This document shows positions 9,983-59,545 of a stretch of DNA of 64,000 nucleotides, piece by piece. Position 1 is the stretch's first letter. The number at the start of each line of letters is the position of its first letter. Below the pieces are notes generated by a model. It saw only the letters and a program-made list of their open reading frames with translations. It did no database searches and was not told where the DNA came from. The DNA is taken from sequence record MZ475892.1; one strand, 5' to 3'. The translations under genes were made by a program, and so were the position numbers.

Positions 9983-10036
9983 GCACTAATAAGGTCAAAA
10001 TGACCATTCTCTGCTATATGCTGCCTATGCTATAAT
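9983..10036 (+). promoter_or_regulatory. Box promoter 1
   Basis: GCACTAATA-AGGTCA-AAAT, 33-nt spacer, TGC-TATAAT. Confidence 0.7.
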
Positions 10037-10082
10037 AGTTGCGAGCGCATTGCTCAATACAATCATGCTGAGGAGCATAACA

Positions 10083-10424
10083 ATGAACGCATCTACTTTC
10101 GATTTCTCTATCATCTGCACCGAGAGCTTCAACATTAACGAGCTGAACAAAATCGCCGTTGAGCTGAACAAGCTGATCACCAACTCGCAGATCAAAATTG
10201 AAGCCGTAGAGATTGATGATGAAGGCGCCGAGTGTATTCTTCTGGCTGTCGGTCTTGATGAAGACGGCGAAGAGACTGGCGACAACGGCTACTCCCTGCA
10301 TCTGGACAACGGCGACTATCAGATCGTATATCTCGGCGTGCCGCATCCTGACTTCGATAAGCACGAACTTGCGACCAGCGACTTTGAGTTGTTCATCAAA
10401 TCAGTGAACGGCCTTGAGTTCTAA
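10083..10424 (+). CDS. Hypothetical acidic protein
   Basis: GAGGAG RBS in a hairpin; first gene after the box promoter. Confidence 0.8.
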   Translation: MNASTFDFSIICTESFNINELNKIAVELNKLITNSQIKIEAVEIDDEGAECILLAVGLDEDGEETGDNGYSLHLDNGDYQIVYLGVPHPDFDKHELATSDFELFIKSVNGLEF

Positions 10425-10444
10425 TCACTAATCTGGAGTCTAGT

Positions 10445-10798
10445 ATGCGCCCTAACGCCGCAGCACATCTCGCCGCATCTCTTGCCTTGTTTGCGAAACG
10501 TAACCGTAGAGCAAAATTCACTATCTCTACAAAATCGATAATTCAAGCGACTGATATGGGGACTGGTGCCTATATACCTGATCTATTCATTATGCAATTA
10601 GACCTAGAGTTGCGTCTACGTGGTTACATCCTGATTAAACAGGAGGAGACAAACTACATGATAATGAAAGCTAGACCCCGCAATCATGGCCTTCGCATTT
10701 CTTCAAATCATATAGATGAATATATGAACCTGCCCCTTGAGGTAGTCGATCTTCAACTCTCTGAGGCGTTGGACACAGAAGACACAGAAGAAGACTAA
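10445..10798 (+). CDS. Hypothetical protein
   Basis: GGAG RBS. Confidence 0.65.
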   Translation: MRPNAAAHLAASLALFAKRNRRAKFTISTKSIIQATDMGTGAYIPDLFIMQLDLELRLRGYILIKQEETNYMIMKARPRNHGLRISSNHIDEYMNLPLEVVDLQLSEALDTEDTEED

Positions 10799-10850
10799 CA
10801 CTAATCTGGCAGAAATCGCCGTTGTGTTTAGACGCTCAACGGCATACTAT
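10798..10850 (+). promoter_or_regulatory. Box promoter 2
   Basis: ACACTAATC-TGGCAG-AAAT, 32-nt spacer, TACTAT. Confidence 0.55.
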
Positions 10851-10899
10851 TATGTCTCTAGCGCAATGACGCGCTACAACAACGAAAGAGAGAAACAAC

Positions 10900-11154
10900 A
10901 TGAGCGAAGACGTTAAAGTAACAATCGATTTAGTAGCTGACTTTGTATCACGCACCGAAGTTGTGTTTGAAGACGGTCAATCATCTAATGACTGGCTCGC
11001 GCCGTATGATCTGCGCCTGAACGTAACTGAGCCTCAAGGGCCGAACGGCTACCCCGAAGTTGAAATCGTCGGCCAGCGCGATAACGTCTTGCGCTTCTTT
11101 GATGAGCAGATGCCTGACAGCGACATTACAGAAGACTCGCTTGAATCTGCCTAA
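10900..11154 (+). CDS. Hypothetical protein
   Basis: 84-aa acidic ORF. Confidence 0.7.
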   Translation: MSEDVKVTIDLVADFVSRTEVVFEDGQSSNDWLAPYDLRLNVTEPQGPNGYPEVEIVGQRDNVLRFFDEQMPDSDITEDSLESA

Positions 11155-11213
11155 GCAACAAACAACACTGTGGCGTTACGGCACCACTTTTCTATTTCTG
11201 ATCTGAGGTCAAT

Positions 11214-11753
11214 ATGAAACAAAAATTCTTATTCTTGCGCATGAGCCGACACGAGCTGAATCAGCATTTGTTTTTACTTCGTGGCATGAGCCGTGAGCGT
11301 CTTGAATCATTTACTGGCATTATCGCCGTTGTCAAAGACGATACGACGATGGCGAACATCGATGATACTGACCTGTATTATTTCAGCGAAGTAACAGCCG
11401 AAGAGACAACATCAGAGACGCAACAAACCTGGTGGAACCTGATTCATTACTACGACAATCAGATTGCTATCGGCTCACTCCCACGTATAGAGCCGCTGCT
11501 GCCTGACGATTTAGTTGAGCGCATCAAAACAACTCGCAGCAATCGCTTCTACTACGAGTTCGATACGCAAATGCCAGAAGTGTTGGCCACTGTTGATCTT
11601 GACCTACACTTCTTGCCGTCTGCCGCTCAGCCTCGTGTGAAGAAGCCTAAAGAAGAACAGCCAGAAGTTAATCCCCTGGCCGCATACACAGTCGAACAAC
11701 TGTGTGCCGAACTGCGTACTCGCCTGAGTGCAAAAATCACTATCGAATTTTAA
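11214..11753 (+). CDS. Hypothetical protein
   Basis: GAGG RBS; 179 aa. Confidence 0.75.
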   Translation: MKQKFLFLRMSRHELNQHLFLLRGMSRERLESFTGIIAVVKDDTTMANIDDTDLYYFSEVTAEETTSETQQTWWNLIHYYDNQIAIGSLPRIEPLLPDDLVERIKTTRSNRFYYEFDTQMPEVLATVDLDLHFLPSAAQPRVKKPKEEQPEVNPLAAYTVEQLCAELRTRLSAKITIEF

Positions 11754-11794
11754 TCAACTAGCACAGGGACGTGCCTCTAACTGAGATCAAAACT

Positions 11795-12400
11795 ATGTTC
11801 ACCAAAGCATTCTTCTTCAAAACTAACTACTCTGTATTGGCCGAAGGTGAGTTCGCGCTGCCTGTTGACTCACTGACCTCTCTCGTCAACTCGCGTATTT
11901 TCATCTGCATCACAGAAGACAACCTGCGCTTCGCACTGACCAACATCACTGTGCAGCCGATTCGCAATGGCTTCTTGCGCGTTGGCTTCGAGCCGAAGAC
12001 TGACGTGAATGCAATCACTACTCCAATCATCACGCCTAAAACGATGTGGAGCGAATATGATTTTGATGCGTGCAGTGTTGAAAACATCCCGTCATTCAAT
12101 ATCAGTACGCATGAAGACAAGAACAACGAACAACTGATTGCACTGTCATATGACCTTCGTATGGCTCTCATGCATTATCGTGAAGGCATGTACTGCGTGA
12201 CCGACATCGTTTTGCGCCTGCATGAGCATGGCATCTTTGTCGTAGATATTGATCAGAATCTCAAGGTTGCTCTCTCGCCTATCGCCGTGCTTAGCGAACG
12301 ACCTACACATGCGGTCAGTCTGAGTAAAGACAACGGTGTGCTGTCTCGCATTGATGACTTCGAACTGCCTGATCTCGCCAAACTGATCGTCCTACTGTAA
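11795..12400 (+). CDS. Hypothetical protein (start uncertain, 11771 or 11795)
   Basis: Long co-directional ORF. Confidence 0.7.
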   Translation: MFTKAFFFKTNYSVLAEGEFALPVDSLTSLVNSRIFICITEDNLRFALTNITVQPIRNGFLRVGFEPKTDVNAITTPIITPKTMWSEYDFDACSVENIPSFNISTHEDKNNEQLIALSYDLRMALMHYREGMYCVTDIVLRLHEHGIFVVDIDQNLKVALSPIAVLSERPTHAVSLSKDNGVLSRIDDFELPDLAKLIVLL

Positions 12401-12452
12401 ACAAACAACTCTAGCCTCGCATCGTGCGGGGCTTTCTGCTTTGGAGAATACC

Positions 12453-12713: not shown

Positions 12714-12714
12714 C

Positions 12715-13394: not shown

Positions 13395-13402
13395 TAATCT
13401 TT

Positions 13403-13429
13403 AGGGCTGCCATCTTGGTGGCCCTTTTT
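13403..13429 (+). terminator. Intrinsic terminator
   Basis: AGGGCTGCCA-TCT-TGGTGGCCCT followed by TTTT. Confidence 0.8.
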
Positions 13430-13433
13430 GTTT

Positions 13434-13441
13434 TCTGTAAA
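13434..13441 (+). promoter_or_regulatory. TCTGTAAA motif
   Basis: Directly after a terminator and upstream of the next operon. Confidence 0.5.
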
Positions 13442-13477
13442 CTACACGCACAATCCCAACAATGCGAGAACGCACAG

Positions 13478-13852
13478 ATGCCAAAGCGCCGCTTTTATTT
13501 GATGTTCTTTATCAGTCAGGCAGAACTCGACGCCAAGACTTTCTATCAACACAACATGCGCATCCTGACAACGATACGCCGCACACGCTGCATCTTCCTT
13601 GTGGTAAGAGAGACTGGTGAAGTCTATGTGCCAGGCAGCGCCGTGTATCAGTCTGCAATCGAAGAAGATCTAACGCAGATGGTCTTTGACGATCTGCACA
13701 AGGCCACCGAGTCTGTGAATGCGGTTGAGTCCTTTGCTCAAGCCATCGCAGTAAACAAAAACGATAAGACAGTTCGCTACTGCGGCCGCAATCCAGAGGT
13801 GAGTGTCGTCTTCTTTGATCGCATGTTCACGAAAGTGGAGGTTCATATATGA
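13478..13852 (+). CDS. Hypothetical protein (start uncertain)
   Basis: ORF downstream of the terminator. Confidence 0.6.
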   Translation: MPKRRFYLMFFISQAELDAKTFYQHNMRILTTIRRTRCIFLVVRETGEVYVPGSAVYQSAIEEDLTQMVFDDLHKATESVNAVESFAQAIAVNKNDKTVRYCGRNPEVSVVFFDRMFTKVEVHI

Positions 13853-14756: not shown

Positions 14757-15055
14757 TCTACGAATGGGTCCACGACCTTGAAGGTAACGAAAGTCAGAAT
14801 CTGCCTATCTTGCCTCCAGACATTTATGCGTATGTGCGCGATGCCGTCACTGGCGCACGTACTCCAATCAACTTTGAAGGACGCACCGAGTTACAGCGTC
14901 AAGACAAGAAAGTCATAGGCGTTGTCTATTGGTCTAATCGAGCTAATCTGATTTCATGGACGGGCGTCGAGCGCTTTCGTTTTACGCTGTATGTAGTACG
15001 CGCCTCACGTAAGTCAAATGAGCAACAGGAGGAAGCTCAAGTCTGCACTAATTAG
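14744..15055 (+). CDS. Hypothetical protein
   Basis: Overlaps the upstream stop; its 3' end runs into box promoter 3. Confidence 0.5.
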   Translation: MGDIIYEWVHDLEGNESQNLPILPPDIYAYVRDAVTGARTPINFEGRTELQRQDKKVIGVVYWSNRANLISWTGVERFRFTLYVVRASRKSNEQQEEAQVCTN

Positions 15056-15097
15056 GCTGAAATAGCTATCGCGCATAATACGCTCCTGTGCTATACT
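15045..15097 (+). promoter_or_regulatory. Box promoter 3
   Basis: GCACTAATT-AGGCTG-AAAT, 32-nt spacer, TGC-TATACT. Confidence 0.6.
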
Positions 15098-19413: not shown

Positions 19414-19951
19414 ATCTTTCGGTGTGTATCTGACGTTCATTCTGCGCCATCGACCGCAAGACATTGGCATTGCAATGGACACCCAAGGCTGGGTATCAGT
19501 TCCAGACTTGCTCGAACGTGCTCAATACAAGAAGCAGCCAATCACGTTAGAGATGTTGCGCGAAGAAGTTGCTACTGACGGTAAGGGCCGCTTCCAGTTC
19601 AACGCTGCCCACTCTCGCATTCGTTGTGTGCAGGGACATTCAGTTGAGCATGTGATTCTTAACCTAAAGCCGTATACGAATCACAATGACCCGCTGTATC
19701 ACGGAACGGCCAGCAAGAACGTTGCGTCTATTCTTGCGCAGGGAATTCTTCGCGGTAAACGTAAACACGTCCACATCGCAACCAACACCGCTACTGCTAA
19801 GCAAGTTGGTCAGCGTCACGGTGAACCTGTTGTGTTTGAGATCGACACGTATGCCATGATCGTTGCTGGCTATAAGTTCGAACAAGCCGAGAACGGTGTG
19901 ATTCTTACCGAGCACGTTCCATCCCGATATCTAAGGTTGGTAGAGTTATGA
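19406..19951 (+). CDS. kptA: RNA 2'-phosphotransferase (Tpt1/KptA family)
   Basis: ILRHRP, GWVSV, KGRF, IRCVQGHS, LYHGT, RKHVHI, RHGEPVVFEID, NGVILTEHVP. Confidence 0.92.
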   Translation: MAKSFGVYLTFILRHRPQDIGIAMDTQGWVSVPDLLERAQYKKQPITLEMLREEVATDGKGRFQFNAAHSRIRCVQGHSVEHVILNLKPYTNHNDPLYHGTASKNVASILAQGILRGKRKHVHIATNTATAKQVGQRHGEPVVFEIDTYAMIVAGYKFEQAENGVILTEHVPSRYLRLVEL

Positions 19952-20355
19952 CTGAACAACGAATGAGTTATTGCGGTTCACGTTACATCCGTACATCTTC
20001 TGGCAGGTGGTATTTGCTTTTCGAACGAGCCGCCTGCTTGTGCATCAATCGTCATGGTACCCAGTACTGGCGAGCAGGTACGCAAGTGTGGAAGGATGTG
20101 TCTCTCTCAACTCGCGCCACTTTGGAGAACGAGTTTATCAGTCGTACCCGCAAAGATTTCAGGGAGTCGAAGTCTGCGTACAACAGATGGGGCAAGGTGA
20201 TTCGTACACTCATTCTAGGTGCAGGCACTAACGAGCATCTCCACGATTTAGCGTCGATTCTTGAGGCGCTGAGACAGACGCATATAGGGCGCAAGCAACA
20301 GCAACTGCGCACTACATTGGATGAAATAGCTATTCAGTCGAGAACTACCCTGTGA
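19948..20355 (+). CDS. Hypothetical protein
   Basis: ATGA overlap; its 3' end encodes box promoter 4. Confidence 0.6.
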   Translation: MTEQRMSYCGSRYIRTSSGRWYLLFERAACLCINRHGTQYWRAGTQVWKDVSLSTRATLENEFISRTRKDFRESKSAYNRWGKVIRTLILGAGTNEHLHDLASILEALRQTHIGRKQQQLRTTLDEIAIQSRTTL

Positions 20356-20361
20356 TATAAT
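20308..20361 (+). promoter_or_regulatory. Box promoter 4
   Basis: GCACTACAT-TGGATG-AAAT, 32-nt spacer, TGA-TATAAT. Confidence 0.7.
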
Positions 20362-22930: not shown

Positions 22931-23194
22931 ATGGCAGTAGGTTTCGCCAAAGATGATGACGTGTCCAATACCGTCGAAACAAACGTGCTGAATGAAATCG
23001 ACCGCGCTCGTTCTGAGTTGCGTGGCGCTGGTAGTTCGCACTGTATCAACCCTGACTGTGGTGCAGAGATTCCACTCATGCGCCGTGTAGCAATGCCGAA
23101 CGCTCGCTACTGCGTTAGCTGTCAAGCTCACCATGATGGTACGCCTGCTGTTGGCTACAATCGTCGTGGCTCCAAAGACTCTCAACTGAGGTAG
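22931..23194 (+). CDS. DksA/TraR C4 zinc-finger protein (YbiI-like)
   Basis: MAVGFAKDDDV, HCINPDCGAEIPLMRRVAMPNARYCVSCQ. Confidence 0.85.
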   Translation: MAVGFAKDDDVSNTVETNVLNEIDRARSELRGAGSSHCINPDCGAEIPLMRRVAMPNARYCVSCQAHHDGTPAVGYNRRGSKDSQLR

Positions 23195-23938: not shown

Positions 23939-24304
23939 ATGATTTCTCGAATCAGTAATCTCCTCTTTGCCGAATCAATGTCCGTTGAGCAGTTAGCGCA
24001 GGCATTGCGTATTGAAAACTTCAACGCGACTGTTCGTGGTGAGTTCAAGTTGGTTGCTGGCACTAACTCCAGTGGCTATATCACTTCTGCACTGTCAAGT
24101 CCTGTCGAAGTGCTGCGCGACCTGAAAGGCGTTCAGACTTTGAAAGATGCAGGCTTCTCTGACCCTGACATTGCACTCGCTCTCGGCATCGACCGTTTGC
24201 GTCTCAAGAAAGTTTATAACGAGGCACGCAAGAGCAAAAAGAAGCCTGTTGAGCCAGCTCCAGTGCAGCGTACCTCTAAAGCAATTTCACTCGACGATCT
24301 GTAA
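23939..24304 (+). CDS. Protein with a C-terminal helix-turn-helix-like segment
   Basis: LKDAGFSDPDIALALGIDRLRLKKV. Confidence 0.55.
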   Translation: MISRISNLLFAESMSVEQLAQALRIENFNATVRGEFKLVAGTNSSGYITSALSSPVEVLRDLKGVQTLKDAGFSDPDIALALGIDRLRLKKVYNEARKSKKKPVEPAPVQRTSKAISLDDL

Positions 24305-25806: not shown

Positions 25807-26787
25807 ATGCGTTTTGGTTTCGCCTGTAAACTGCTTGATGACAACGGTAAGCAACCGTACACGAACAAGAGCCTGAGCTATGCTCATTTCTCCAAGCTGT
25901 CTCAGACAGAGCAGCAAGAAAAGCTGGTGCTTGTCGTCACACACAATCTGACCTCGTTACTTGAGATGATCAGACACGTTGGTCGTCTGCGTGCAGACTT
26001 GCGCATGTTTCGAATCACAAGCGAGCTACTTCCGCTGTTCACGCACCCGATGGTCACACGCATGTATCTCCAAACACACATGACCAAACTGACTGACACG
26101 ATGTTGGCAACGTGTGGTGCAGCGGCTAGACGTCTTGGTGTTCGACTGTCATTCCACCCTGGTCAGTTTACCGTGCTTGCGTCTGACCGACCCGACGTTA
26201 TGCTTAACTCGATTAATGAAATGGAGTATCACGCCTACTGTGCGCAGGCTATGGGCTACGGTCGTAAGTTCCAAGATTTCAAAATCAACATTCATCTGAG
26301 TGGTCGTCGTGGTGCCGCAGGTTTCAGAGACGCCTACTCTCGTCTAAGCGATCATTGCCGCAAGATGATCACGGTAGAGAATGACGAGTACACTTCCTCG
26401 ATCGAGGATTGTCTTGAGCTTGCCGACATTTGTCCTGTTGTTCTCGACATTCACCATCACTGGGTAATGACTAACGAATACATTCAGCCGACCGATGATC
26501 GTGTTCAACGTGTCATTGACTCGTGGCGAGGCGTTCGCCCTGTTGCGCATTACTCTGTGTCACGCCCAGAGTTCATACCGTCTACGGGTCTGCCTGATCA
26601 GAACAAGCTAGAAGCAAAGTCTGCCTCGCTGCGTGCTCATTCTGACTACTACCACAACGACAGCGTAAACGAGTGGGCCCTCAGCTTCGAGCAATTCGAC
26701 CTGATGTGCGAGTCTAAAGCGAAGAATCTAGCACGCACGAAACTAGCCCTTTTTAAGGGCAACTCTGCACAAATATGGTCAAAATAA
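25807..26787 (+). CDS. uvsE: UV DNA damage endonuclease (UvsE/UvdE)
   Basis: RFGFACK, RLSFHPGQFTVL, KINIHLSG, TVENDE, VLDIHHHW, SWRGVRPVAHYS, AHSDY. Confidence 0.92.
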   Translation: MRFGFACKLLDDNGKQPYTNKSLSYAHFSKLSQTEQQEKLVLVVTHNLTSLLEMIRHVGRLRADLRMFRITSELLPLFTHPMVTRMYLQTHMTKLTDTMLATCGAAARRLGVRLSFHPGQFTVLASDRPDVMLNSINEMEYHAYCAQAMGYGRKFQDFKINIHLSGRRGAAGFRDAYSRLSDHCRKMITVENDEYTSSIEDCLELADICPVVLDIHHHWVMTNEYIQPTDDRVQRVIDSWRGVRPVAHYSVSRPEFIPSTGLPDQNKLEAKSASLRAHSDYYHNDSVNEWALSFEQFDLMCESKAKNLARTKLALFKGNSAQIWSK

Positions 26788-26820
26788 GGCTTGTTTTAGA
26801 AGGTGCCCCTATGATACACT
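26767..26820 (+). promoter_or_regulatory. Box promoter 5
   Basis: GCACAAATA-TGGTCA-AAAT, 33-nt spacer, TGA-TACACT; overlaps the uvsE 3' end. Confidence 0.7.
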
Positions 26821-26871
26821 GATTACGAGCACTGTATGCTCGTTTCTACTGATTCAAGAGGATAAGACAAT

Positions 26872-28982: not shown

Positions 28983-30203
28983 ATGGCTATCATTTCCGCA
29001 GAAGAACAAGCGCGTCTGGATTCACTTGCTGCTATCGTAGCTAAGATGTGGGCACAAGGCGGCCCTGCTGTGCGTGATGCTCTGCGTTACGTTGCTAACC
29101 AAATGCTGAGCGACGAGCACTCATTCCTGTACGAAGAAGTGCCTGGCGTAACGCCTGACATTGAATCTGTCTACCACCATCTGAGCGATTTGCCACTGAC
29201 GGGTATGACCCGCATCGTGCGCAATCCTGACTTGATCAGCTCGCTTGAAGATCTGATGAACAAAAACGAGCGTGAGATCTTCGGCTCTGCCGTGCGTAAC
29301 AGCGCGTACACTATGTTCAAACTTTTACCCCAGAATGACAACGCTGTGTTCTGCCATCCAGGTAAAGGTGCTACCTCTCGCACCCAGCCGCGTCAGGTCG
29401 CTGAAAGACTGCATCGTGGTTTAAGCTACATGTTGTCCGTGCACGGTCTGGACTCGTATATCAAAAAGTCTGACAATCAAATTCGCTCTTACGGACATAC
29501 GCGCTTAGCCTCTCTGGTAATCGCAGTCGCAGTCAAAGGCGAACGCAGTGTTGCTACTCGCATCGTACCTCTGTGGTGTATGGACAAGCACACGGAAGAG
29601 GTGGGCACGATTGAACTTGATCAGGATATCCCGAACGATAAACCTGCTTACTCAACTGAGGTAGAAACTGATATCCAAGTTTGGCCGAAGTTTGAAGCAA
29701 AACAACTTAGAGATATCCTGCTCAAGCATGGGAATTATATCGAGTCTAAGCTGCGCGGCATGGACCGCGAAGAATTAGATGATACCTATGAAGCCTTCGT
29801 TGATGCGTACCTTAACAATACTCACGACGAGGGTGATGAAGACGAAGATGATGAGTGGGACGAAGAAGAGGATGAAGACGAAGAAGATGCCTTCTGTACT
29901 GAAATCCCTTCGCGCCTAGCTCTACCTATCGAACTGCCTATTGTTAATCTCGAACGTCCGAAGTTAGACGTTCGCCCAGGCATGCGTTTGAAGACCAAAA
30001 AGCCTAGACAGTCTCATATTCAGAATATTCTGATTGATCCAGTTTGGCACGCAGTTGACCCACAAGACGAGAACAATATTCATTATTTCAGTGTGTCTAT
30101 TGTTGCCCGTGATACTGTCGGTCATAAGGCTATTTCAGCTTCGCCGCTTGAAGCACTGACTATCTCCAACGTGCTGATGCAGATCGCTGAAACTAACACT
30201 TAA
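28983..30203 (+). CDS. Hypothetical protein with an internal D/E tract
   Basis: 406 aa; DEGDEDEDDEWDEEEDEDEED. Confidence 0.8.
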   Translation: MAIISAEEQARLDSLAAIVAKMWAQGGPAVRDALRYVANQMLSDEHSFLYEEVPGVTPDIESVYHHLSDLPLTGMTRIVRNPDLISSLEDLMNKNEREIFGSAVRNSAYTMFKLLPQNDNAVFCHPGKGATSRTQPRQVAERLHRGLSYMLSVHGLDSYIKKSDNQIRSYGHTRLASLVIAVAVKGERSVATRIVPLWCMDKHTEEVGTIELDQDIPNDKPAYSTEVETDIQVWPKFEAKQLRDILLKHGNYIESKLRGMDREELDDTYEAFVDAYLNNTHDEGDEDEDDEWDEEEDEDEEDAFCTEIPSRLALPIELPIVNLERPKLDVRPGMRLKTKKPRQSHIQNILIDPVWHAVDPQDENNIHYFSVSIVARDTVGHKAISASPLEALTISNVLMQIAETNT

Positions 30204-30248
30204 CTGGACAAAACAGCGCTTCTTAACGAGGCGCTTTTCTGCTATAAT
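30196..30248 (+). promoter_or_regulatory. Box promoter 6
   Basis: ACACTTAAC-TGGACA-AAAC, 32-nt spacer, TGC-TATAAT. Confidence 0.75.
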
Positions 30249-30314
30249 AGCAGCTAGAGCATAAGCTCTCACGTTTGCATCTACTATACGTTAAATACGG
30301 GAACCTCACATATT

Positions 30315-34525: not shown

Positions 34526-35671
34526 ATGACTAATTCATCTCTGCCTTTCGTTTCTTGGTTCGAACGTGACAACTATTTTGATGACATGCTTGAGCGCCTC
34601 GATCTCAAACGTCTCTGGGGCTATGTTGAAAAGAACAACGTGGTCAACAAGACTAAATACAATCTGCCTAACCTCACTGCCTACCACACTACCGAGCACA
34701 TGAAAGAAGTTGCGTGCATCGCGTCCTCCCTACTGCACCGCGAGTCGAACCACGACTGGCAGATTCGTCTGATGGAATATCCGTTAGTCGTCGCGTGCCT
34801 TTTCCACGATATGAATCACAGTCTGGGTAAATATACTGATGACGTGAACATCAACCATGCGCTCGTTGCGTTTAATGACTATCTTAATAGCAAAGATGAG
34901 AATCAGGGCAACGACAAGCTGCTGTTTGAATATCGCGATCAGATCTGTGCGCTGATTCGTTGCACCCAATTCCCGTTCCATGACTCACGCAAGCCAACTA
35001 ACCTGATGGAGCGCTGCATTCGTGATGCGGATATTCTATACGGCCTGCAGGATGACGCAATGCCTGCTGTTGTGATTGGTCTACTGGATGAAGTGAACGT
35101 TCGTTTGGCTCCAGAAAGCAAATACTCCACCGCACAGTGGGTGGCAGGTCGCATTGAGTTCCTGTTGTCCTGTGAGATGTTCACCGAAACTGCTAACAAA
35201 ATCTTCTGTGATGCTCTCAGCACCAACAGTCCAAACTATCACGGAAATGTGCTGCAATCTTTCCTTGAGATGAAAGTGCGGCTGATCGATGTTCGTGCAG
35301 GTAAGTTACGTGGTGGCGATGTTATCTGGACAGACACAGAGAACGACTCAACCTATCGTCCACGCCAAATCAGAAACATCGGCAACGAAGCGCTGCCAGA
35401 CGTTAACGTGTATTTTACTGACGGTCAGGCTTGCGGCTATCGTAGCGGGGAGACCGTTCAGTTGCTGCCTAATACAGAGATGGTAAAGCTCGAAGACATT
35501 GTAGTTGGCGACATTATTCTTGAGCCTGCACAGGGTGAAGTGAAGCGCGATCTACATCGCATCGTAAACATCGCTAACGCCGGCCTGCACGAGAGCGTGC
35601 TTTATCTCGAAAATGGCGGTGTGTTTACGTCAGCGCCCAAAGGCCGTGTCTGTCGTGTAGTCAGCAAATAA
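34526..35671 (+). CDS. HD-domain phosphohydrolase with two C-terminal KOW/SH3-like repeats
   Basis: YHTTEH, LFHDMNH, IRCT, IRDADIL; C-terminal repeats LRGGDVI..FTDG and IVVGDII..LENG. Confidence 0.8.
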   Translation: MTNSSLPFVSWFERDNYFDDMLERLDLKRLWGYVEKNNVVNKTKYNLPNLTAYHTTEHMKEVACIASSLLHRESNHDWQIRLMEYPLVVACLFHDMNHSLGKYTDDVNINHALVAFNDYLNSKDENQGNDKLLFEYRDQICALIRCTQFPFHDSRKPTNLMERCIRDADILYGLQDDAMPAVVIGLLDEVNVRLAPESKYSTAQWVAGRIEFLLSCEMFTETANKIFCDALSTNSPNYHGNVLQSFLEMKVRLIDVRAGKLRGGDVIWTDTENDSTYRPRQIRNIGNEALPDVNVYFTDGQACGYRSGETVQLLPNTEMVKLEDIVVGDIILEPAQGEVKRDLHRIVNIANAGLHESVLYLENGGVFTSAPKGRVCRVVSK

Positions 35672-35716
35672 CTGGACGAAATAAGGCTACTCTGCTTAGG
35701 CTGCTTATGCTATAAT
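35664..35716 (+). promoter_or_regulatory. Box promoter 7
   Basis: GCAAATAAC-TGGACG-AAAT, 32-nt spacer, TGC-TATAAT. Confidence 0.75.
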
Positions 35717-39414: not shown

Positions 39415-39711
39415 ATGTCTGAACAAACTCAATTGCCTGGCCAAGTCGTTATCGTTTGTGTTATGCAGGAATCTGATTCTTTCATGGGTCAGAAGTTTGA
39501 TGGCTATGTGTACTTGCTTAATCCAGAACACAAAGAGATGTTTGAACGTCACCTGCAGGCGCACAAAAGTCGTGAGAACTATTCACACATTATCAGCCAC
39601 GCTAATCACTATATAACTAGCACGGGCTTCGATGCGCTTCATGCTGCTATACGCAAAGATGCAAACAGACCCTGGCTGTGGTCAGATACTGATTACACGA
39701 TAACTGCATAA
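39415..39711 (+). CDS. Hypothetical protein
   Basis: GAGGT RBS. Confidence 0.7.
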   Translation: MSEQTQLPGQVVIVCVMQESDSFMGQKFDGYVYLLNPEHKEMFERHLQAHKSRENYSHIISHANHYITSTGFDALHAAIRKDANRPWLWSDTDYTITA

Positions 39712-39758
39712 ATCTGGACAAAATAGAGGTAGCTAGAAAAAGCTGCCCCTGATATACT
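39706..39758 (+). promoter_or_regulatory. Box promoter 8
   Basis: GCATAAATC-TGGACA-AAAT, 32-nt spacer, TGA-TATACT. Confidence 0.8.
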
Positions 39759-39786
39759 AAAAGCGTAGCTTGTGCTGCGCTTTTTT
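39759..39786 (+). terminator. Terminator overlapping the start site of box promoter 8
   Basis: AAAAGCGTAGC-TTGT-GCTGCGCTTTTTT. Confidence 0.65.
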
Positions 39787-40460: not shown

Positions 40461-40898
40461 ATGAAATTTGATCAAGCACCAACGAAAGCACAACTCGTGC
40501 TGCTGGCCCTCGCTCTCGAATCCGTTCTCCTCTCTATGGAGAAAACGTTTATCAACCGTAATCTGCTGGAGCAGTTACTTGCGAAGTACGGCATCTCGTT
40601 TAACGATCTGAAAGAGTTGCGAGAGTACGGCGAAAAGCATTCCGCCATCGGTACCAGCGTTGCTCAAGTTATGGAGATAGCTGCCTTGCATGTGGCTCAT
40701 CTGAAAACAGAACCTGTGCCTGAATACAGTCAAGACGACCTTGATCTAATTCGCGTAGAATACGAGCCAATCGATACGTCTGTCCTACGCCAGGGCGCTG
40801 TGAATGATGGGGTTATCACAGTGCAGCAAGCAGCCACTTTTGAGCGCGATCAGATACTGACTGCTATTCTTGAGTACCGACTGCGCTCAGAAGCATAA
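40461..40898 (+). CDS. Hypothetical protein
   Basis: GAGGT RBS. Confidence 0.75.
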   Translation: MKFDQAPTKAQLVLLALALESVLLSMEKTFINRNLLEQLLAKYGISFNDLKELREYGEKHSAIGTSVAQVMEIAALHVAHLKTEPVPEYSQDDLDLIRVEYEPIDTSVLRQGAVNDGVITVQQAATFERDQILTAILEYRLRSEA

Positions 40899-40945
40899 AT
40901 CTGGACAAAATCGTGGTTGTAGCAAAAACCGTCCTATGTTATAAT
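40893..40945 (+). promoter_or_regulatory. Box promoter 9
   Basis: GCATAAATC-TGGACA-AAAT, 32-nt spacer, TGT-TATAAT; TTGTAG at the -35 position. Confidence 0.8.
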
Positions 40946-41154: not shown

Positions 41155-41976
41155 ATGCCAGAAGCACGCAAACCTCGCCCAGCTGATCGTTTCGCTAAAG
41201 CCCGTGCAGAGAAAAACTCACCGGAGCGTCAAGATGCGGCAGCCCAGCGCACGTATAAAGACACTCCGCCTAAATCTGTTCAGGTGAAACTTGATGCTGT
41301 GGCAGCTTCTAAGAAGAAAGTTTCTCGCGGCCCCAAGGCCTCTCGTCCACGTCAGTCGCCTGCTGTTGACGCAGCACCAAAGCCTCGCATTCGTGATGAG
41401 GAACGTGTGTACAATCTCGTACACATGATTCTCTCTGCGTGGAAAGCCGATGCAGAAAACGCGGCAGCAAGTGTGGGAATCATTAAAGTGTCTCGTCGTA
41501 AGATTGAGGGTGCGTTACGCGATCTCAAGAATACGCGCTTCACTAAAATCCCAGGCTTAATCAATGACGTGCTTGTCTACAATGAACTGGTAGCTGAGTT
41601 CGGACAGTGGGTGTACGTCGAGCACGACAGTCCTGATTGGATTTTTGTGCGCCTGCCTGAAAACAGCACGCCTGTGATTCGCGCTGACATTAGCTATGCC
41701 AAGACGGGTGAAACTTCCACGTCTGTTTCGACTTCTAGTGAAGTTCTGCTGAAAGATCTTAGCGAAGACGAAGAAGATGAGATCCCCGAGAATGTCGAGT
41801 ACGACGATGCGGACGAGACTGACGAAGACGAAGAGGAGCCGTATGACTACAGCGCTTGGTCTCTGCGTGACCTGCAGGAGTATGCGAAGCGCTATGACTT
41901 CTTGCAGCCCGACACTGAGGGGTTCGATGATCGCGAGAAGTTGATAGCAGCCATCGAGCTGGGGGAACAGCACTAA
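41155..41976 (+). CDS. Basic-tail / acidic-tract protein with a C-terminal HeH-like module
   Basis: R/K/A/P-rich N-terminus, D/E tract, YSAWSLRDLQEYAK..DREKLIAAI. Confidence 0.8.
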   Translation: MPEARKPRPADRFAKARAEKNSPERQDAAAQRTYKDTPPKSVQVKLDAVAASKKKVSRGPKASRPRQSPAVDAAPKPRIRDEERVYNLVHMILSAWKADAENAAASVGIIKVSRRKIEGALRDLKNTRFTKIPGLINDVLVYNELVAEFGQWVYVEHDSPDWIFVRLPENSTPVIRADISYAKTGETSTSVSTSSEVLLKDLSEDEEDEIPENVEYDDADETDEDEEEPYDYSAWSLRDLQEYAKRYDFLQPDTEGFDDREKLIAAIELGEQH

Positions 41977-42030
41977 GCACAAATATGGACAAAATAGTGG
42001 TAGCATCTAAAGCATGACCTGTGCTACACT
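41977..42030 (+). promoter_or_regulatory. Box promoter 10
   Basis: GCACAAATA-TGGACA-AAAT, 33-nt spacer, TGC-TACACT. Confidence 0.75.
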
Positions 42031-42120: not shown

Positions 42121-42149
42121 GCACAGACTGCCTGCGCTTTTGATAGACA

Positions 42150-42202
42150 GCATAAATCTGGACAAAATCATGGTTGTATCAGAATGCTGCCTGTCATACA
42201 CT
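42150..42202 (+). promoter_or_regulatory. Box promoter 11
   Basis: GCATAAATC-TGGACA-AAAT, 32-nt spacer, TACACT; TTGTAT at the -35 position. Confidence 0.75.
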
Positions 42203-42263
42203 TTAATGAGTCGAGCAATAGTGCTCGCAACAAACTAAATCCCAATACTGAGGAGTATTACAC

Positions 42264-54903: not shown

Positions 54904-54917
54904 GTCAAATTTGTCTC

Positions 54918-54972
54918 TACACTAAGCTGGACAGATCGTGGGTAGCGTCTGACGCTCTGCCTATGTTATAAT
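54918..54972 (+). promoter_or_regulatory. Box promoter 12
   Basis: TACACTAAGC-TGGACA-GAT, 33-nt spacer, TGT-TATAAT. Confidence 0.75.
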
Positions 54973-55043
54973 ACATATAGGACAAGTAGTGTCTGAATAT
55001 GCTAATATCGAGTGGTCAACGCTACTCATTAGGAGAAACGAAA

Positions 55044-57068
55044 ATGGCGAAAACGCCTAAAGCCGCAAAAGTCAAAAAGGGTGACGGCTCCCAAGATGGC
55101 TTCACTATCGCAGAAGGGTTGGACGGCATAAGGCTAAACCCTGGCATGTACATGGGTCAACAGGGTGCGGACATGGCGTATCGCGCTGTGAAAGAACCTG
55201 TGGACAATGACTACGATGAATACATCGCTGGTCGTAACAAGTTGATCGAAGTGGTCATTGATTACGATAGCGACCTGAACATTGTAGCTGACCAAGCAGG
55301 CGGCATTCCTACCGACTTCAAGAAACTAAAAGACGGTACGAAAGAAACGATCATGACCGCAGCGTTTAGCCGTGTTCATGCGGGTGGTAAATTCAACGAT
55401 CAGGCATATAAGACCTCAGCTGGTACACACGGTGTGGGTGTAGCCGCACTGAACGCAATCTCCAGTCAGTTGCGTGTATGGTCAATGTACAAAGGCAGTT
55501 GCGCTTATCAGATGTGGCAGTGTGGCGAAGTCAAGTCTGGCAAAGACCCTAAGAAAGTCAAGACCATCGACAAAGACGTTATGAGCCTGCTGCGCGATAA
55601 GAAGCACAGCAAGTACGGTACTGTGGTAGCGTGGACGCTTGACCAGACTGTTGTGTCTGCTGATGCGCAGCGTGGTAAGAAGCTGCCTAAGAACTACCGC
55701 CATGCTGCTCCTAATCCAGCTCAGCTTGGTGAGTGGCTGCGTAACATGTCGATGCTCAACCCGGGCCTTGAGATTCGCCTGACGTTGATCAAGAAGGGCA
55801 AGCGCAAAGAGTTCACGTTCATCAACAAGAAAGACCTGAACTATGTTGTGAAGACTATGTGTGAAGAACGCGAGCTGGGTACTGTCGGCAAGCCGTTCAT
55901 CTTCAAGTCTGACAATATCACGGCTGCGCTCGTCTGGACAGATCATGCAGACACCGACAACTTCCTCAGTTTCGTTAACACCAGCCCAACAGTTGACGGC
56001 GGGTGGCATGTAGTAGGTTTCCGTGATGCTCTGTTTGATGCAATCAAGCCGTTCATGAAAGAACCGAAAGGTAAGGGCAAGAAAAAGCAGGGCTTCAAAC
56101 AAGAAGACTTGTTGATTGGCCTGACCGGTATGTTCGACTGGCGTATGCACGGTGCTCAATACACCTCGCAGGTAAAAGACAAGCTGGCCAGCCGCGTCGA
56201 GAAAGACGTGTACGAAATGCTGAAAGATGCTTTCGTGAAATACTTCAAGGACAATAAGAAGGTCGCTACGACAATCATCAAGCGTGCCGAAGCGATGAAC
56301 AAGGGACGTGAAGAACTCAGCGCCGTCGTTAAGTCTATGGCTGATACGAAGAAGAAGCTGAAAGGTAACGCACTGCCTGCCGACCTCGTTGTCGCAAACA
56401 AGTGTAAGCCGCATGAGCGTGAGCTTGTCGTGGTGGAAGGGGATTCTGCTGGTGGTACTGCAAAAGATGCGCGTAACCCTGACTATCAGGAAGTTATGAA
56501 AGCTGGTGGTAAGCCGCTGAACGGTCTGAAAGCAAGTCTGGCTGACGTGCTAAAGCACAAAGAAGTGCAGGGCATGCTGGTGAGTATCGGTGCTGACCTG
56601 AAGTCGCTTGACCCGAAAGCAGAAGCACCAAAGTTAAGCACAAAGAATCTGCGTATCGGCAACATCCTGTTCCTTGCTGATGCTGACCCAGATGGCTTCC
56701 ACATCAACGTGCTGTTCCTAGGTGTTATCTATCGCTTGCTGCCTGACTTGATGAAAGAAGGTCGTGTGTGGATTGTTGACGCACCGCTGTATAACGTTAT
56801 TCATCAGGGCAAACACTACGGTGGTATGACGTTTGAAGAATGCCGTGCTAAAGCGCCGTCTGCTGTAAAAGACAAAGACATTGTACGCGCTAAAGGTTGG
56901 GGTGAAGTTGAACCTGACGTGCTTGAAGCAATCGCGTTCAATCCGAAAACTCGTCGTCTCATTCGTGTTAACCCGTTTGAGAACGTTGAGCAGGAACGTT
57001 TCTTTAGAGGTGTAGTTGCAGAAGATGCCGTGCACCGTCGTCGCTTACTCGGTCTGGAGGCAGCATAA
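55044..57068 (+). CDS. gyrB: Type IIA topoisomerase B subunit (GyrB/ParE-like)
   Basis: IRLNPGMYMG, EPVDNDYDE, HAGGKF, GTHGVG, EGDSAGG, DADPDGFHI, KGWGE. Confidence 0.95.
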   Translation: MAKTPKAAKVKKGDGSQDGFTIAEGLDGIRLNPGMYMGQQGADMAYRAVKEPVDNDYDEYIAGRNKLIEVVIDYDSDLNIVADQAGGIPTDFKKLKDGTKETIMTAAFSRVHAGGKFNDQAYKTSAGTHGVGVAALNAISSQLRVWSMYKGSCAYQMWQCGEVKSGKDPKKVKTIDKDVMSLLRDKKHSKYGTVVAWTLDQTVVSADAQRGKKLPKNYRHAAPNPAQLGEWLRNMSMLNPGLEIRLTLIKKGKRKEFTFINKKDLNYVVKTMCEERELGTVGKPFIFKSDNITAALVWTDHADTDNFLSFVNTSPTVDGGWHVVGFRDALFDAIKPFMKEPKGKGKKKQGFKQEDLLIGLTGMFDWRMHGAQYTSQVKDKLASRVEKDVYEMLKDAFVKYFKDNKKVATTIIKRAEAMNKGREELSAVVKSMADTKKKLKGNALPADLVVANKCKPHERELVVVEGDSAGGTAKDARNPDYQEVMKAGGKPLNGLKASLADVLKHKEVQGMLVSIGADLKSLDPKAEAPKLSTKNLRIGNILFLADADPDGFHINVLFLGVIYRLLPDLMKEGRVWIVDAPLYNVIHQGKHYGGMTFEECRAKAPSAVKDKDIVRAKGWGEVEPDVLEAIAFNPKTRRLIRVNPFENVEQERFFRGVVAEDAVHRRRLLGLEAA

Positions 57069-57322
57069 TGGTTAAAAGTGAAAACCTATCCATCGGAACG
57101 CAAGTTCGTTTTCTCGATATGCCTGTCTTTCAGCACCCGCCAATGACCGAAGAACAACGCAAGCAGTATGAAGCGTTAATGGCAAAAGGTCGTGAGTTGT
57201 CGAAAAACGTTACCGTATCTGCATTCAGTGTAGTTGACGGTAAGCCTGCTGAGCGTGTGCAGGTGCAGATGAGTCGCACAACTCTCGATAAGATTAATGC
57301 GATGCACTCAGGAGATCAGTAA
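57068..57322 (+). CDS. Small hypothetical protein
   Basis: TAATG coupling to gyrB. Confidence 0.65.
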   Translation: MVKSENLSIGTQVRFLDMPVFQHPPMTEEQRKQYEALMAKGRELSKNVTVSAFSVVDGKPAERVQVQMSRTTLDKINAMHSGDQ

Positions 57323-57561
57323 TGCTCAAGGGTAAGAAAGTAAATAAAGCACCGTCGCGTGCTTCACGAATCTTTCCTGTGGTCGCAGGCACAGAACACT
57401 GGCCTATCCCATTGTTCGATATGCCTGACATTCACATCAATATGAGCGATGAGCAGAAAGCTCGTCTTGATTCTGCTATGGCTAACGTCAAGCAACACAT
57501 TAAAGATAGCCCGTACAACGGGAAGCGATTCTTTACTGTTCCTGGAGATGCGCATGAATAA
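57322..57561 (+). CDS. Small hypothetical protein, apparent paralogue of the preceding ORF
   Basis: TAATG coupling; shared DMP...M(T/S)(E/D)EQ...AMA. Confidence 0.65.
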   Translation: MLKGKKVNKAPSRASRIFPVVAGTEHWPIPLFDMPDIHINMSDEQKARLDSAMANVKQHIKDSPYNGKRFFTVPGDAHE

Positions 57562-57793
57562 GTTCCAGCGTCACATTAGATCTCTGCCTGAATCTGGTGC
57601 CAGCTTTCAGCAAGCAGCACCGCTCGGCCGTACTGTCGTAACACATTCAGCGGGTATCACACGCGGTGTAACTCGCATGGCTTATCCTCAGTTGCAGCAA
57701 ATCCCGCGCAACTTATCGGGCCTGAATGATGTGAACGTTCGTCGCATCGATATTAACTTGGGTGAAAACGTTTTCATCCAGACGCATTCGTAA
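57554..57793 (+). CDS. Small hypothetical protein
   Basis: GGAG RBS. Confidence 0.6.
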   Translation: MNKFQRHIRSLPESGASFQQAAPLGRTVVTHSAGITRGVTRMAYPQLQQIPRNLSGLNDVNVRRIDINLGENVFIQTHS

Positions 57794-57802
57794 GAGGCTG
57801 GC

Positions 57803-59464
57803 ATGCCAATCAAACCTAAGAAAGTCAAAGCGGCCAAAGCAGTTAAGCCTGCTAAAGCGACCGCTGTAGCGAAGCCGCTTAAAGTCAAAGTGAAATCGAA
57901 AGCCGTTTCTGTCGATGACATTAAGACAAAGAAAAAGTCGAAAGAAGTTGCCACAGTGCAGACAGGCGCATCGCTCTATCCGATGATTGGTCAAGACGAA
58001 TCGAACATTCGTGATCAGGGTCTCGCAGATTACACACGCCACGCGCTAGGTGTGTACGGTTCTTACGTTGTTGAAGACCGAGCTATCGCTGACTATCGTG
58101 ATGGCCTCAAGCCTGTGCACCGTGCGCTGCTGTGGTCGTTGTCTGATCTTAACTTGCGTCCTGGCGGAGCGTTCAAGAAGTCTGCGCGTACTGTTGGTGA
58201 CACGATTGGTAAGTATCACCCACACGGCGATGCTGCCTGCTACGGCGCAATGGTAACGATTGCAAACACAGTGCCACCAGCTGTTGCTGGTTCTGGTAAC
58301 TGGGGTAGCCCTGTTGACCCCGCTGCTGCGATGCGTTATACCGAAGCGAAGATGAGTAAGTTCACGGGCACGTTCTTGCTCGACTCTGATTACTTAGAAG
58401 TTGTGCCGCGTGTGCCTAACTTCTCAAACGATCTTGAGCTGCCACTTTACTTGCCTGCGCTGCTGCCTTACATGTTGTTCAATGGCTCTGTGCCTGCACC
58501 AGCGTACGGCGTCAAGTGTGGTAACCCGTCATTCAGCTTCACGTCCGTATCTAAAGTCGTGTGTGAGATGCTGAGTGGCAAAGAGTACACAGCGAAGACG
58601 CTTGCGAAGACGCTTGAGATTCGCCATGAGTTCGGTTGTATCGACGTTAGCTCTGACGAAGATATGTATCAGCTCATCTCAACAGGCCGCGGCAAAGTCA
58701 CATACGAACCGCTGATTAAGATCGATGAGAAGTCGAAGACCATCACGATTCAAACGTATGTGCCTGCCGGTATGTCCAACACTGCGGGTATCACGAAGAA
58801 GCTGGAGAAGATTTCTGAGTGGCCAGGCATTAGCTCCGCAGCAAACGCCAGTGGTAAGAAGAACAAGAACGCAGGTCCTTACGGTGCAGCGTTTGAGTTC
58901 CGCGTACGTGGCAGCGAAGACCAGTTGTATGAACTCGCCTCACGCATTCAGAAGGAAGTGACTGCGGGCGTCAACTACAATCTGGGCGTTACGATTCGTC
59001 GCGCTGATAAGCCGAACACCTTCAAGTATCTGAACTATCTGGATTACTTCAAGGCGTGGGTAGCGTATCGTATCAAACTCGAAACAGCCATGCTGAACAA
59101 CAAGCTGGCCAAAGCAGAGAAAGCCTTGCACTTGCAGCAAGTATATCTGTGGGCTGTTGACAACATGAAGCAACTGCTGGCTGCCTTGCCTAAAGTGTTA
59201 GTAGCAGAAGACCCAGACAAAGCGCTGGCCAAAGCGTGCAAGATTCCAGTTGAAGATGCGAAGATCATCCTCGACCGTCAAGTGCGTAAACTGGCTAAGC
59301 TGGAACGTGGTGGTCTGGTCGCTAAGATCAAAGACATTAAGGAAGAGATTGCTGGTTATAAGGCAGGCTTGAAAGCGCCAGGCAAATATGCAGCACAGAG
59401 CACGGCTGCTAAAGTCAAAGCGTACATCAAATCACCTGATGATAAGCTGCCCGTAAGTCTTTGA
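57803..59464 (+). CDS. gyrA: Type IIA topoisomerase A subunit (GyrA/ParC-like) lacking the C-terminal pinwheel
   Basis: RAIADYRDGLKPVHR, KSARTVGD, KYHPHGD, GNWGS, AAMRYTE (catalytic Tyr). Confidence 0.95.
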   Translation: MPIKPKKVKAAKAVKPAKATAVAKPLKVKVKSKAVSVDDIKTKKKSKEVATVQTGASLYPMIGQDESNIRDQGLADYTRHALGVYGSYVVEDRAIADYRDGLKPVHRALLWSLSDLNLRPGGAFKKSARTVGDTIGKYHPHGDAACYGAMVTIANTVPPAVAGSGNWGSPVDPAAAMRYTEAKMSKFTGTFLLDSDYLEVVPRVPNFSNDLELPLYLPALLPYMLFNGSVPAPAYGVKCGNPSFSFTSVSKVVCEMLSGKEYTAKTLAKTLEIRHEFGCIDVSSDEDMYQLISTGRGKVTYEPLIKIDEKSKTITIQTYVPAGMSNTAGITKKLEKISEWPGISSAANASGKKNKNAGPYGAAFEFRVRGSEDQLYELASRIQKEVTAGVNYNLGVTIRRADKPNTFKYLNYLDYFKAWVAYRIKLETAMLNNKLAKAEKALHLQQVYLWAVDNMKQLLAALPKVLVAEDPDKALAKACKIPVEDAKIILDRQVRKLAKLERGGLVAKIKDIKEEIAGYKAGLKAPGKYAAQSTAAKVKAYIKSPDDKLPVSL

Positions 59465-59467
59465 AAA

Positions 59468-59475
59468 TCTGTAAA
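59468..59475 (+). promoter_or_regulatory. TCTGTAAA motif
   Basis: AAAATCTGTAAATA right after the gyrA stop. Confidence 0.55.
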
Positions 59476-59493
59476 TAGACTATGATAAACTCT

Positions 59494-59545
59494 GCACTAA
59501 GTTGGACAGAAGCCGCTTGAGATTATTCTTAGTCTATGATATACT
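59494..59545 (+). promoter_or_regulatory. Box promoter 13
   Basis: GCACTAAGT-TGGACA-GAA, 31-nt spacer, TGA-TATACT; TTGAGA at the -35 position. Confidence 0.7.

Follow-up and report, generated by a model that had tools for sequence, protein, structure and literature searches.

Jumbo phages without an RNA polymerase of their own must capture the host enzyme, and the mechanism by which they do so is little known. Known activators that contact the alpha subunit of the host enzyme include phi29 p4 and the Ogr and Delta proteins of P2 and P4, whose sites (TGT-N12-ACA) lie near -55. T4 early promoters are of an "uber" type, in which UP, -35, TGn and -10 elements occur together with extra conserved regions, and they are boosted by the injected Alt protein (PMC2988021). 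Here, we analyzed a window of 64,000 nt, corresponding to bases 200,307-264,306 of Erwinia phage pEa_SNUABM_34 (MZ475892.1; 264,306 bp; host Erwinia amylovora), which carries 13 sites that each join a conserved upstream element to a -10 hexamer. This family was found to be real, complete and deeply conserved, and the 13 sites are very probably promoters. Positions below are those of the window unless they are given as record positions.

An earlier note on this DNA had listed 13 box cores with spacers of 33, 32, 32, 32, 33, 32, 32, 32, 32, 33, 32, 33 and 31 nt, and we found every core where it had been placed, with best computed spacers identical to these. It had also proposed a motif scan of the whole genome. 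We built a weight matrix from a 27-column upstream block and a 13-column -10 block, separated by a gap of 30-34 nt, and ran it over both strands of the 264,306-bp genome. The 13 sites scored 30-54 bits, only one other position reached 10 bits and none reached 12, which makes the 13 sites the complete family; on the minus strand, no matrix match was found in the whole genome. Ten shuffled genomes gave 0-2 matches at 10 bits or more and none at 20. The upstream block alone separated the 13 sites (20.6-36 bits) from the next best match (16.9 bits). Leave-one-out scores were 24-51 bits for 12 sites and 13.7 bits for the site at 10807, the latter being low because its -10 is deviant (TACTAT, no TG); its upstream block still scored 23.6 bits, and SNUABM_16, AD1 and Yoloswag have this deviant form as well. 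All 13 sites are on the + strand, ahead of genes and in the same orientation as these, and confined to record positions 210-260 kb. The distance from hexamer to start codon is 42-71 nt in 10 of the 13 and 209-273 nt in the other three, and several upstream elements overlap the 3' end of the preceding gene. Genes in the record are encoded on the + strand between about 185 kb and 46 kb, a stretch that passes through the record origin, and on the - strand in the remaining 46-185 kb.

The anatomy of the module was resolved with a consensus of 37 sites, namely the 13 sites of pEa_SNUABM_34 and 24 sites from two Alexandraviruses, which reads A.T..GCA.a.AactGGacaAAAt.g.g.T, 16-18 bp, ccT.TGaTAtAaT. 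The underlying architecture is ACTnnGCA-N3-A-N3-GG-N3-AAAT, followed by an invariant T that opens a weak -35 (TTG/TAG), a spacer of 16-18 bp, and T(A/G)TGnTAYAMT. No or almost no variation is seen at the last two bases of GCA, at either base of GG, at the middle A of AAAT or at the T located 15 nt after the start of the box, with GCA and GG at 2 bits each. This T, the first base of the -35 hexamer, is held at a more constant distance from the box than from the -10; T/A and then G/C come after it. Because it marks the start of the -35, the variation of 31-33 nt in the "spacer" is the ordinary variation of a 16-18 bp sigma70 -35/-10 spacer. The upstream element and the -35 stub are thus one rigid block. 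The -35 is weak, as the earlier note had said, with TTG in only 5 of the 13 sites of pEa_SNUABM_34. TGn, described there as usual, is present in 11 of the 13, mostly as T(A/G)TGn; it is absent at 10807 and displaced at 42159. TGGACA, on the other hand, did not hold up as the conserved core, since AGGCTG, TGGTCA or TGTCCA stands at the same place in relatives. The TAnnnT hexamer is found in all 13 sites, as TATAAT, TATACT or TACACT in 12 and as TACTAT in one, and this part appears by its sequence to be a TRTG-type extended -10 of sigma70-like character.

With the start predicted 7 nt after the hexamer, the upstream element that the earlier note had placed at a fixed distance is indeed fixed, spans 24 bp and lies at about -64 to -41. 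A-rich runs fall at -55 to -52 and -45 to -41, and GCA (-59 to -57) and GG (-49, -48) are one helical turn apart. The element thus occupies the zone of UP elements and of the C-terminal domain of the alpha subunit (alpha-CTD), with A-tracts near -43 and -53. A 12-bp tandem repeat (ACTnnnCAAATA twice) is visible in Dickeya phage AD1; it was rejected as a general feature, with only about 4 of 12 matches in pEa_SNUABM_34.

The motif is conserved in related phages. pEa_SNUABM_34 belongs to genus Snuvirus, as does its sister pEa_SNUABM_7 (99.9% identical). pEa_SNUABM_16 and AD1, both Alexandravirus, have 12 syntenic sites each, which keep their order and are without exception on the + strand. For most proteins encoded in this region, identity between pEa_SNUABM_34 and the Alexandraviruses is just 30-60%; in orthologous promoters, the motif columns are 100% identical, and the upstream flanks and inner spacer are 21-50% identical, which is near random. 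Yoloswag has at least six sites, reading GCAAA...TGGTCAAAAT, and JA11 (Salmondvirus) has seven sites of a variant form, reading AACTCTGCAAAnnnGTGTCCAAAAT. A scan of IMG/VR with a strict pattern gave matches limited to relatives of about 260 kb, that is, Y3, Alexandra, SNUABM isolates and three metagenomic genomes, and no family member was found in the scanned 64 kb of Lu11 or 50 kb of PaBG. Five contigs of the metagenome-assembled genome "Raoultibacter sp. CGS1Y3-bin67" (JAVWLC01) also carry family members, at 36-51 bits, and are almost certainly misbinned pieces of a related jumbo phage. At JA11 record position 233368, the upstream element stands at its usual distance from a class II-like core (aaatCTGTAAACT; class II is described below) and no usual -10 is present, which hints that the element can be combined with either type of core.

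The lineage pattern bears on what reads the element. GG is fixed in all 37 Snuvirus and Alexandravirus sites and in six of six Yoloswag sites, and is replaced by GT in seven of seven JA11 sites; Dickeya solani was the isolation host of AD1 as well as of JA11. Because the element tracks the phage lineage and not the host (GG to GT in JA11, which shares the host of AD1), we favor a phage-encoded reader of the G/C positions, tentatively and with a confidence that falls a little short of even. Among the alternatives, the one that fares best is that the upstream element is self-sufficient, a UP-like or DNA-shape element in which host alpha-CTDs bind two phased A-tracts, CA/TG steps provide bendability and no extra protein is needed. 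The zone from -40 to -60 is exactly where the element lies, its AAAAT (about -45 to -41) is similar to a proximal UP subsite, the stretch from -55 to -52 is A-rich, and such promoters would be active immediately on entry, like T4 early promoters (PMC2988021). We nevertheless consider this explanation unlikely, as the best-conserved positions are G/C (GCA, GG) and are unexplained by minor-groove reading by alpha-CTD, the distal T-tract of the UP consensus is absent, and GG changes to GT in all seven JA11 sites despite the host common to AD1.

Whether the family is used early was judged against the other promoter signals of the genome. Outside the family, host-type promoters are nearly absent: TTGACA-N16-18-TAnnnT occurs seven times in the genome, nearly always opposite to the gene direction, and both TATAAT (40 observed versus about 67 expected) and TTGACA (121 versus about 216) are under-represented in the whole genome relative to a first-order Markov model, perhaps because stray host promoters are avoided. 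Two further motif classes emerged from word enrichment in intergenic DNA. The class II motif, TCTGTAAATA or (a)aTCTGTAAATA, resembles the T4 late -10 (TATAAATA) and is located ahead of replication genes, 30-45 nt before start codons; it precedes the genes for DNA ligase, DNA polymerase, an SbcD-like nuclease and a sigma factor. The word TCTGTAAA occurs 32 times versus 7.6 expected, with all 32 co-oriented with genes and 19 located 15-75 nt before a called start. Class II is found in + strand regions outside 210-260 kb and in parts of the - strand block. The class III motif, GCTAATTT or gCTAATTT, stands 30-50 nt before the start codons of structural genes, that of the tail sheath among them, and lies mainly in the - strand block (record 47-177 kb); as a word it is statistically weak, with 13 occurrences versus 8.2 expected, but its orientation and position are strongly biased, 12 of the 13 being co-oriented with genes and nine near a start. 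In the record of Pseudomonas phage Lu11 (JQ768459), 16-nt features annotated as "putative middle/late promoter" (AAACTGTAAATAGG, TTAACTGTAAATTC) contain the class II core CTGTAAAT, and so match class II of pEa_SNUABM_34 and not the 13-site family. From this match, the wider phage group appears to share a non-sigma70 promoter class. UUCG-loop terminator hairpins (GGGTGGCTTCGGCTGCCCTTTTT) also recur in intergenic DNA, e.g., at record positions of about 19,120, 35,980 and 146,350, often with a class II motif directly after them.

Since classes II and III are unlike host promoters and the phage encodes a sigma factor, the family is the sole plausible entry for unmodified host sigma70 polymerase, and it is likely, judging from these motifs, that it constitutes an early class read by host sigma70. 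The earlier note had proposed a temporal regulon that includes the topoisomerase operon. A single class that includes the promoter at 54928 was borne out; an early class is more likely than a later regulon that depends on an activator, because the family is the only host-like class of the genome and the two non-sigma70 classes stand before replication and structural genes. The family would drive many small genes of unknown function together with genes for topoisomerase, dUTPase, a UV-endonuclease and an RNA 2'-phosphotransferase. Recognition would depend on three parts, a TRTG-type extended -10, a weak -35 (T-T/A-G) 16-18 bp upstream of it, and the rigid 24-bp upstream element. The G/C positions (ACT, GCA, GG) would be read by a sequence-specific protein of the phage lineage, acting with or against alpha-CTD. 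If the family fires first, a newly made activator cannot be required for the first firing; the reader would either arrive together with the DNA or be produced early and act in feedback, as an activator or as a shut-off repressor. For a separate, element-free promoter from which an activator could be made first, the sole intergenic candidate was TGGTATAAT at 5704, which is without a -35. Taken as a whole, the statement that the 13 sites are the complete host-type set, forming an early class used by host sigma70 on entry with an upstream element read by a phage-lineage protein, is one that we hold in even balance.

A cascade may follow, in which class I, the 13-site family transcribed via host sigma70, would lead to class II (TCTGTAAATA) for replication and then to class III (GCTAATTT) for structural genes. 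It is suggested by two loci, because the promoter at 59503 drives an operon with a possible sigma-like protein and a gene that certainly encodes a sigma factor lies behind a class II motif. The latter gene (record 197807-198844) has this motif 41 nt before its start codon, and its product is 34% identical to PaBG gp118 (E 4e-67), which has been assigned to the sigma70 family by HHpred (PMC7412058). The possible sigma-like protein, encoded at 62464-63603, is orthologous to PaBG gp112, and a weak HHpred similarity of the latter to sigma factors was reported (PMC7412058). We found no Pfam match for it and no match in PDB sequence and profile searches; its AlphaFold2 (AF2) model has a predicted local distance difference test (pLDDT) score of 63, with residues 158-290 poor (central region below 50), and sigma chains ranked among its top fold matches with E > 1 only, in a search for which this key region was too poorly modeled to be meaningful. 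The protein may be the sigma factor for the next promoter class, and which sigma factor would read which class is a guess. DksA/TraR-family proteins bind the secondary channel of bacterial RNA polymerase, and the DksA/TraR-type zinc-finger protein encoded at 22931-23194, which is 75-78% conserved in Alexandraviruses, likely modulates the host enzyme, as far as its domain match indicates. A sigma factor of its own together with this DksA/TraR-type protein suggests that the phage makes use of host core polymerase and reprograms it.

The earlier note had named four candidate binders of the upstream element. Pfam and PHROG searches were made with 30 window proteins, including all four candidates and the best-conserved early proteins, and the only matches above threshold were the DksA/TraR zinc finger and DUF6939. 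The ribbon-helix-helix candidate at 13849 and the helix-turn-helix candidate at 23939 received no support from either database, and they fit poorly because they are only 32-38% identical to their Alexandravirus orthologs while the DNA element is unchanged. In the candidate at 61086, described as an HNH and ribbon-helix-helix protein, only the HNH part was recovered, as a weak sub-threshold match. No MotA- or AsiA-type match was found among these 30 proteins, the part of the proteome that the search covered. The winged helix proposed at 63600 fared better, with a predicted winged-helix fold (AF2 pLDDT 86, H-E-H-H-E-E topology), and nearly all of its top 50 PDB fold matches are MarR, BlaI, PadR or ArsR regulators (E 0.016-0.2, template modeling score 0.4-0.5). 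The protein is conserved across the clade at 81% to 38% identity. On the basis of this model, it is the best candidate binder in the window, or alternatively a candidate partner of the sigma-like protein whose gene it adjoins.

The same protein raises a different explanation, namely that the element is an operator for a phage repressor, e.g., the product of 63600-63992, which ends the early class at the switch to class II by displacing alpha-CTD. MarR-, BlaI- and PadR-like proteins are mostly repressors, the operon of this gene has both a family promoter and a class II motif, and the protein, although clade-wide, is most divergent in JA11 (37-42% identity), where the element differs. We regard repression of this kind as quite improbable. 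MarR-type dimers usually bind inverted repeats, and a site at -64 to -41 leaves the core promoter unoccluded. Three further points count against this protein as a binder in either role: the element is non-palindromic; PaBG has a homolog, yet no family member is present in the 50 kb of PaBG scanned; and winged helices, here with fold matches at just E 0.016-0.2, also mediate protein-protein contacts. That the family is instead a middle class read by the RpoD-like sigma factor of the phage (record 197807-198844) is very unlikely: the phage does encode a full-length sigma70-family protein and the family is the only bipartite (-35/-10-like) promoter class of the genome, but the sigma gene lies behind a class II motif, so that no host-readable entry would be left unless the factor were injected, and the -10 and TRTG are close to the host sigma70 consensus.

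Several points weigh against an early, host-read class with a phage-encoded reader of its upstream element. No DNA-binding or sigma domain was found by Pfam and PHROG among the 30 window proteins. The JA11 argument comes from a single lineage. "Early" and "sigma70" are themselves readings of sequence, as are the start sites, the timing, the reader of the upstream element and the sigma assignment, all of which we infer. An RpoD-like phage sigma factor could in principle read a promoter of the -35/-10 type. If the family does come first, the reader of its G/C positions would be a protein of the host or of the virion, or else a repressor that acts only later. As for a host factor, 185,579 species genomes were scanned with a strict composite pattern, which gave 83 single, chance-like matches, none of them in Enterobacterales; this is weak evidence against a host regulon, and the strictness of the pattern leaves room for a host factor with looser sites. 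No motif description or transcript map for this phage group, and no data on start sites, timing or binding in this phage or its relatives, were found in the literature library that was searched, including the AD1, PaBG and T4 papers.

The coordinates of the promoters and the other features are collected in the following table.

Table 1. Family promoters and associated features of the pEa_SNUABM_34 window; coordinates are window positions except where marked as record positions.
Feature	Position	Strand	Sequence features	Context
Promoter 1	9978..10036	+	core 9992; weak -35 TTCTCT; TATGcTATAAT (-10 hexamer 10031-10036)	before coding sequence (CDS) 10083; orthologs in SNUABM_16 and AD1
Promoter 2	10793..10850	+	core 10807 TGGCAG; -35 TTGTGT; -10 TACTAT without TG	before CDS 10900
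Promoter 3	15040..15097	+	core 15054 AGGCTG; TGTGcTATACT	before CDS 15143
Promoter 4	20304..20361	+	core 20318 TGGATG; TGTGaTATAAT	within 3' end of CDS 19948-20355; heads operon with DksA/TraR-like gene
Promoter 5	26762..26820	+	core 26776; -35 TTGTTT; TATGaTACACT	before CDS 26872
Promoter 6	30191..30248	+	core 30205; TCTGcTATAAT	before CDS 30315
Promoter 7	35659..35716	+	core 35673; TATGcTATAAT	before CDS 35759
Promoter 8	39701..39758	+	core 39715; CCTGaTATACT	before CDS 39812; strong hairpin with T-run directly after, 39759-39785
Promoter 9	40888..40945	+	core 40902; -35 TTGTAG; TATGtTATAAT	leader of 209 nt to CDS 41155
Promoter 10	41972..42030	+	core 41986; TGTGcTACACT	upstream member of tandem pair before CDS 42264; counterpart absent among 12 sites of SNUABM_16 and 12 of AD1
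Promoter 11	42145..42202	+	core 42159; -35 TTGTAT; -10 TACACT, TG displaced	before CDS 42264
Promoter 12	54914..54972	+	core 54928; TATGtTATAAT	before topoisomerase II large-subunit gene 55044-57068; syntenic promoter in Yoloswag and JA11
Promoter 13	59489..59545	+	core 59503; -35 TTGAGA; TATGaTATACT	heads operon 59819-63992; class II motif at 59469, 28 nt upstream of upstream element
Operon of promoter 13	59819-63992			holds possible sigma-like and winged-helix genes
Class II motifs	2812/2820, 12395, 13435, 23900, 28102, 51240, 51265, 51920, 51978, 59469			about 45 more elsewhere in genome
Class III motifs	5599 and 6287			
Hairpins after the -10 (examples)	10857-10874, 26823-26843, 30254-30269, 39759-39785, 42209-42228, 54978-54994			
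Phage sigma factor	record 197807-198844		345 aa; phrog_17569 E 3e-156	just upstream of window
Possible sigma-like protein	62464..63603	+	379 aa; PaBG gp112 ortholog (25% identity, E 5e-27)	
DksA/TraR-type zinc-finger protein	22931..23194	+	87 aa; Pfam PF01258 E 2.2e-10, above curated cut-off	promoter 4 operon
Predicted winged-helix protein	63600..63992	+	130 aa	adjoins sigma-like gene

Most of the transcripts predicted from these promoters would begin with a short stem-loop. We folded the 32 nt starting 3 nt after the hexamer at the 37 sites and compared them with 3,000 random genome segments. The mean folding energy was -7.25 kcal/mol versus -4.21 kcal/mol in the controls (Mann-Whitney p = 4e-8), and 25 of the 37 sites, versus 24% of the controls, were at or below -6 kcal/mol. 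The first paired base is located mostly 3-8 nt after the hexamer, which is the predicted 5' end. Hairpins are kept in orthologous promoters with different, compensating stems, e.g., GAGCA/TGCTC versus GACGC/GCGTC. In E. coli mRNAs, a stem-loop at the very 5' end protects from 5'-end-dependent decay, and by analogy the 5' stem-loops here probably stabilize the transcripts. Many of the hairpins have a common loop of the GC-AAT(A/G) type (GAGCAATAGTGCTC, TAGCGCAATGACGCGCTA), and those with the shared loop might be a protein site instead of a mere stabilizer. The hairpin after promoter 8 resembles a complete intrinsic terminator. As regards the annotation of the record, all genes of MZ475892.1 are labeled "hypothetical", and a stretch of 400 nt (5579-5980) has no annotated gene there, a gene being annotated at this place in pEa_SNUABM_7. 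This stretch contains the element-free TGGTATAAT at 5704 and the class III motif at 5599.

As candidate entry promoters, the 13 sites make up a set that is clean, complete and conserved, and the element that they carry in the alpha-CTD zone is unusual. Three promoter classes and at least one sigma factor make a testable three-step program for Snuvirus, Alexandravirus, Yoloswagvirus, Salmondvirus and Y3, and several phages of this clade are under development against fire blight. A reading of the G/C positions by a phage protein, if true, would be a new route to promoter priority on host polymerase. We also put forward, as a speculation that is more doubtful than probable, that the asymmetric two-turn code (ACT..GCA...A...GG...AAAT) marks the entry promoters of the "hairy" Erwinia/Dickeya jumbo phages of about 260 kb, and that a dedicated phage protein reads the code and docks or redirects the alpha C-terminal domains. 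Such a protein may be DNA-borne, or may be the winged-helix protein beside the sigma-like gene; if true, it would represent a new kind of early-promoter specificity factor that co-evolves with the DNA that it reads (GG to GT in Salmondvirus). As a strong and portable promoter part, the compact 60-bp module would be useful too.

Candidate known systems were compared with the family on sequence, and sigma54 (-24/-12), the NtrC dyad, CRP, IHF, Fis, the marbox, the P2 Ogr dyad and the MotA box were all rejected by comparison with their consensus sequences, which provides leads and not database tests. The marbox, bound by MarA, SoxS or Rob as a monomer with two helix-turn-helix units, is asymmetric and reads GCAC-N7-YAAA. 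The family element is likewise asymmetric and upstream of the -35, with GCA(C) and CAAA parts about one turn apart; however, it reads GCAC-N9-CAAA and is thus 2 bp longer, its C is variable in relatives, and its GG is without a marbox counterpart. Like the promoters activated by P2 Ogr, P4 Delta and phi29 p4, those of the family have a -35 of poor quality and a conserved site whose centre is near -50 to -55, but unlike the Ogr-type sites this one has no dyad: TGC-N10-ACA can be read in pEa_SNUABM_34, and the ACA is lost in relatives. The E. coli UP element (-59 to -38), with the consensus NNAAAWWTWTTTTNNNAAANNN, is matched in position relative to the -10, in the A-tracts near -43 and -53, and in the proximal AAAAT, whereas the distal T-tract is missing in the family, its top-conserved bases are G/C, and the A/T-rich consensus is not reproduced.

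T4 middle promoters similarly combine a host -10, often with TGn, with a phage-specific box at a fixed distance (PMC2988021). In those promoters, however, the MotA box is centred at -30, at a distance of about 12 bp to the -10, and takes the place of the -35, whereas the family box lies 31-33 bp from the -10; the family element is located 15-30 bp further upstream, a -35-like T(T/A)G is kept, and its sequence is wholly unlike (a/t)(a/t)TGCTT(t/c)a. T4 early promoters are also a phage-specific family for host sigma70 with an extended -10, extra conservation in the alpha-CTD zone and, presumably in both cases, use at the start of infection. They differ in having a strong -35 and an A/T-rich UP element, in place of which the family has a weak -35 and invariant, lineage-varying G/C positions (ACT, GCA, GG); an Alt-like protein, unlike in T4, was not identified here. 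Read as early promoters that a phage directs to host sigma70 polymerase and equips with a recruiting element upstream, the 13 sites are of a known kind, and what distinguishes them is the lineage-specific G/C code in the alpha-CTD zone.

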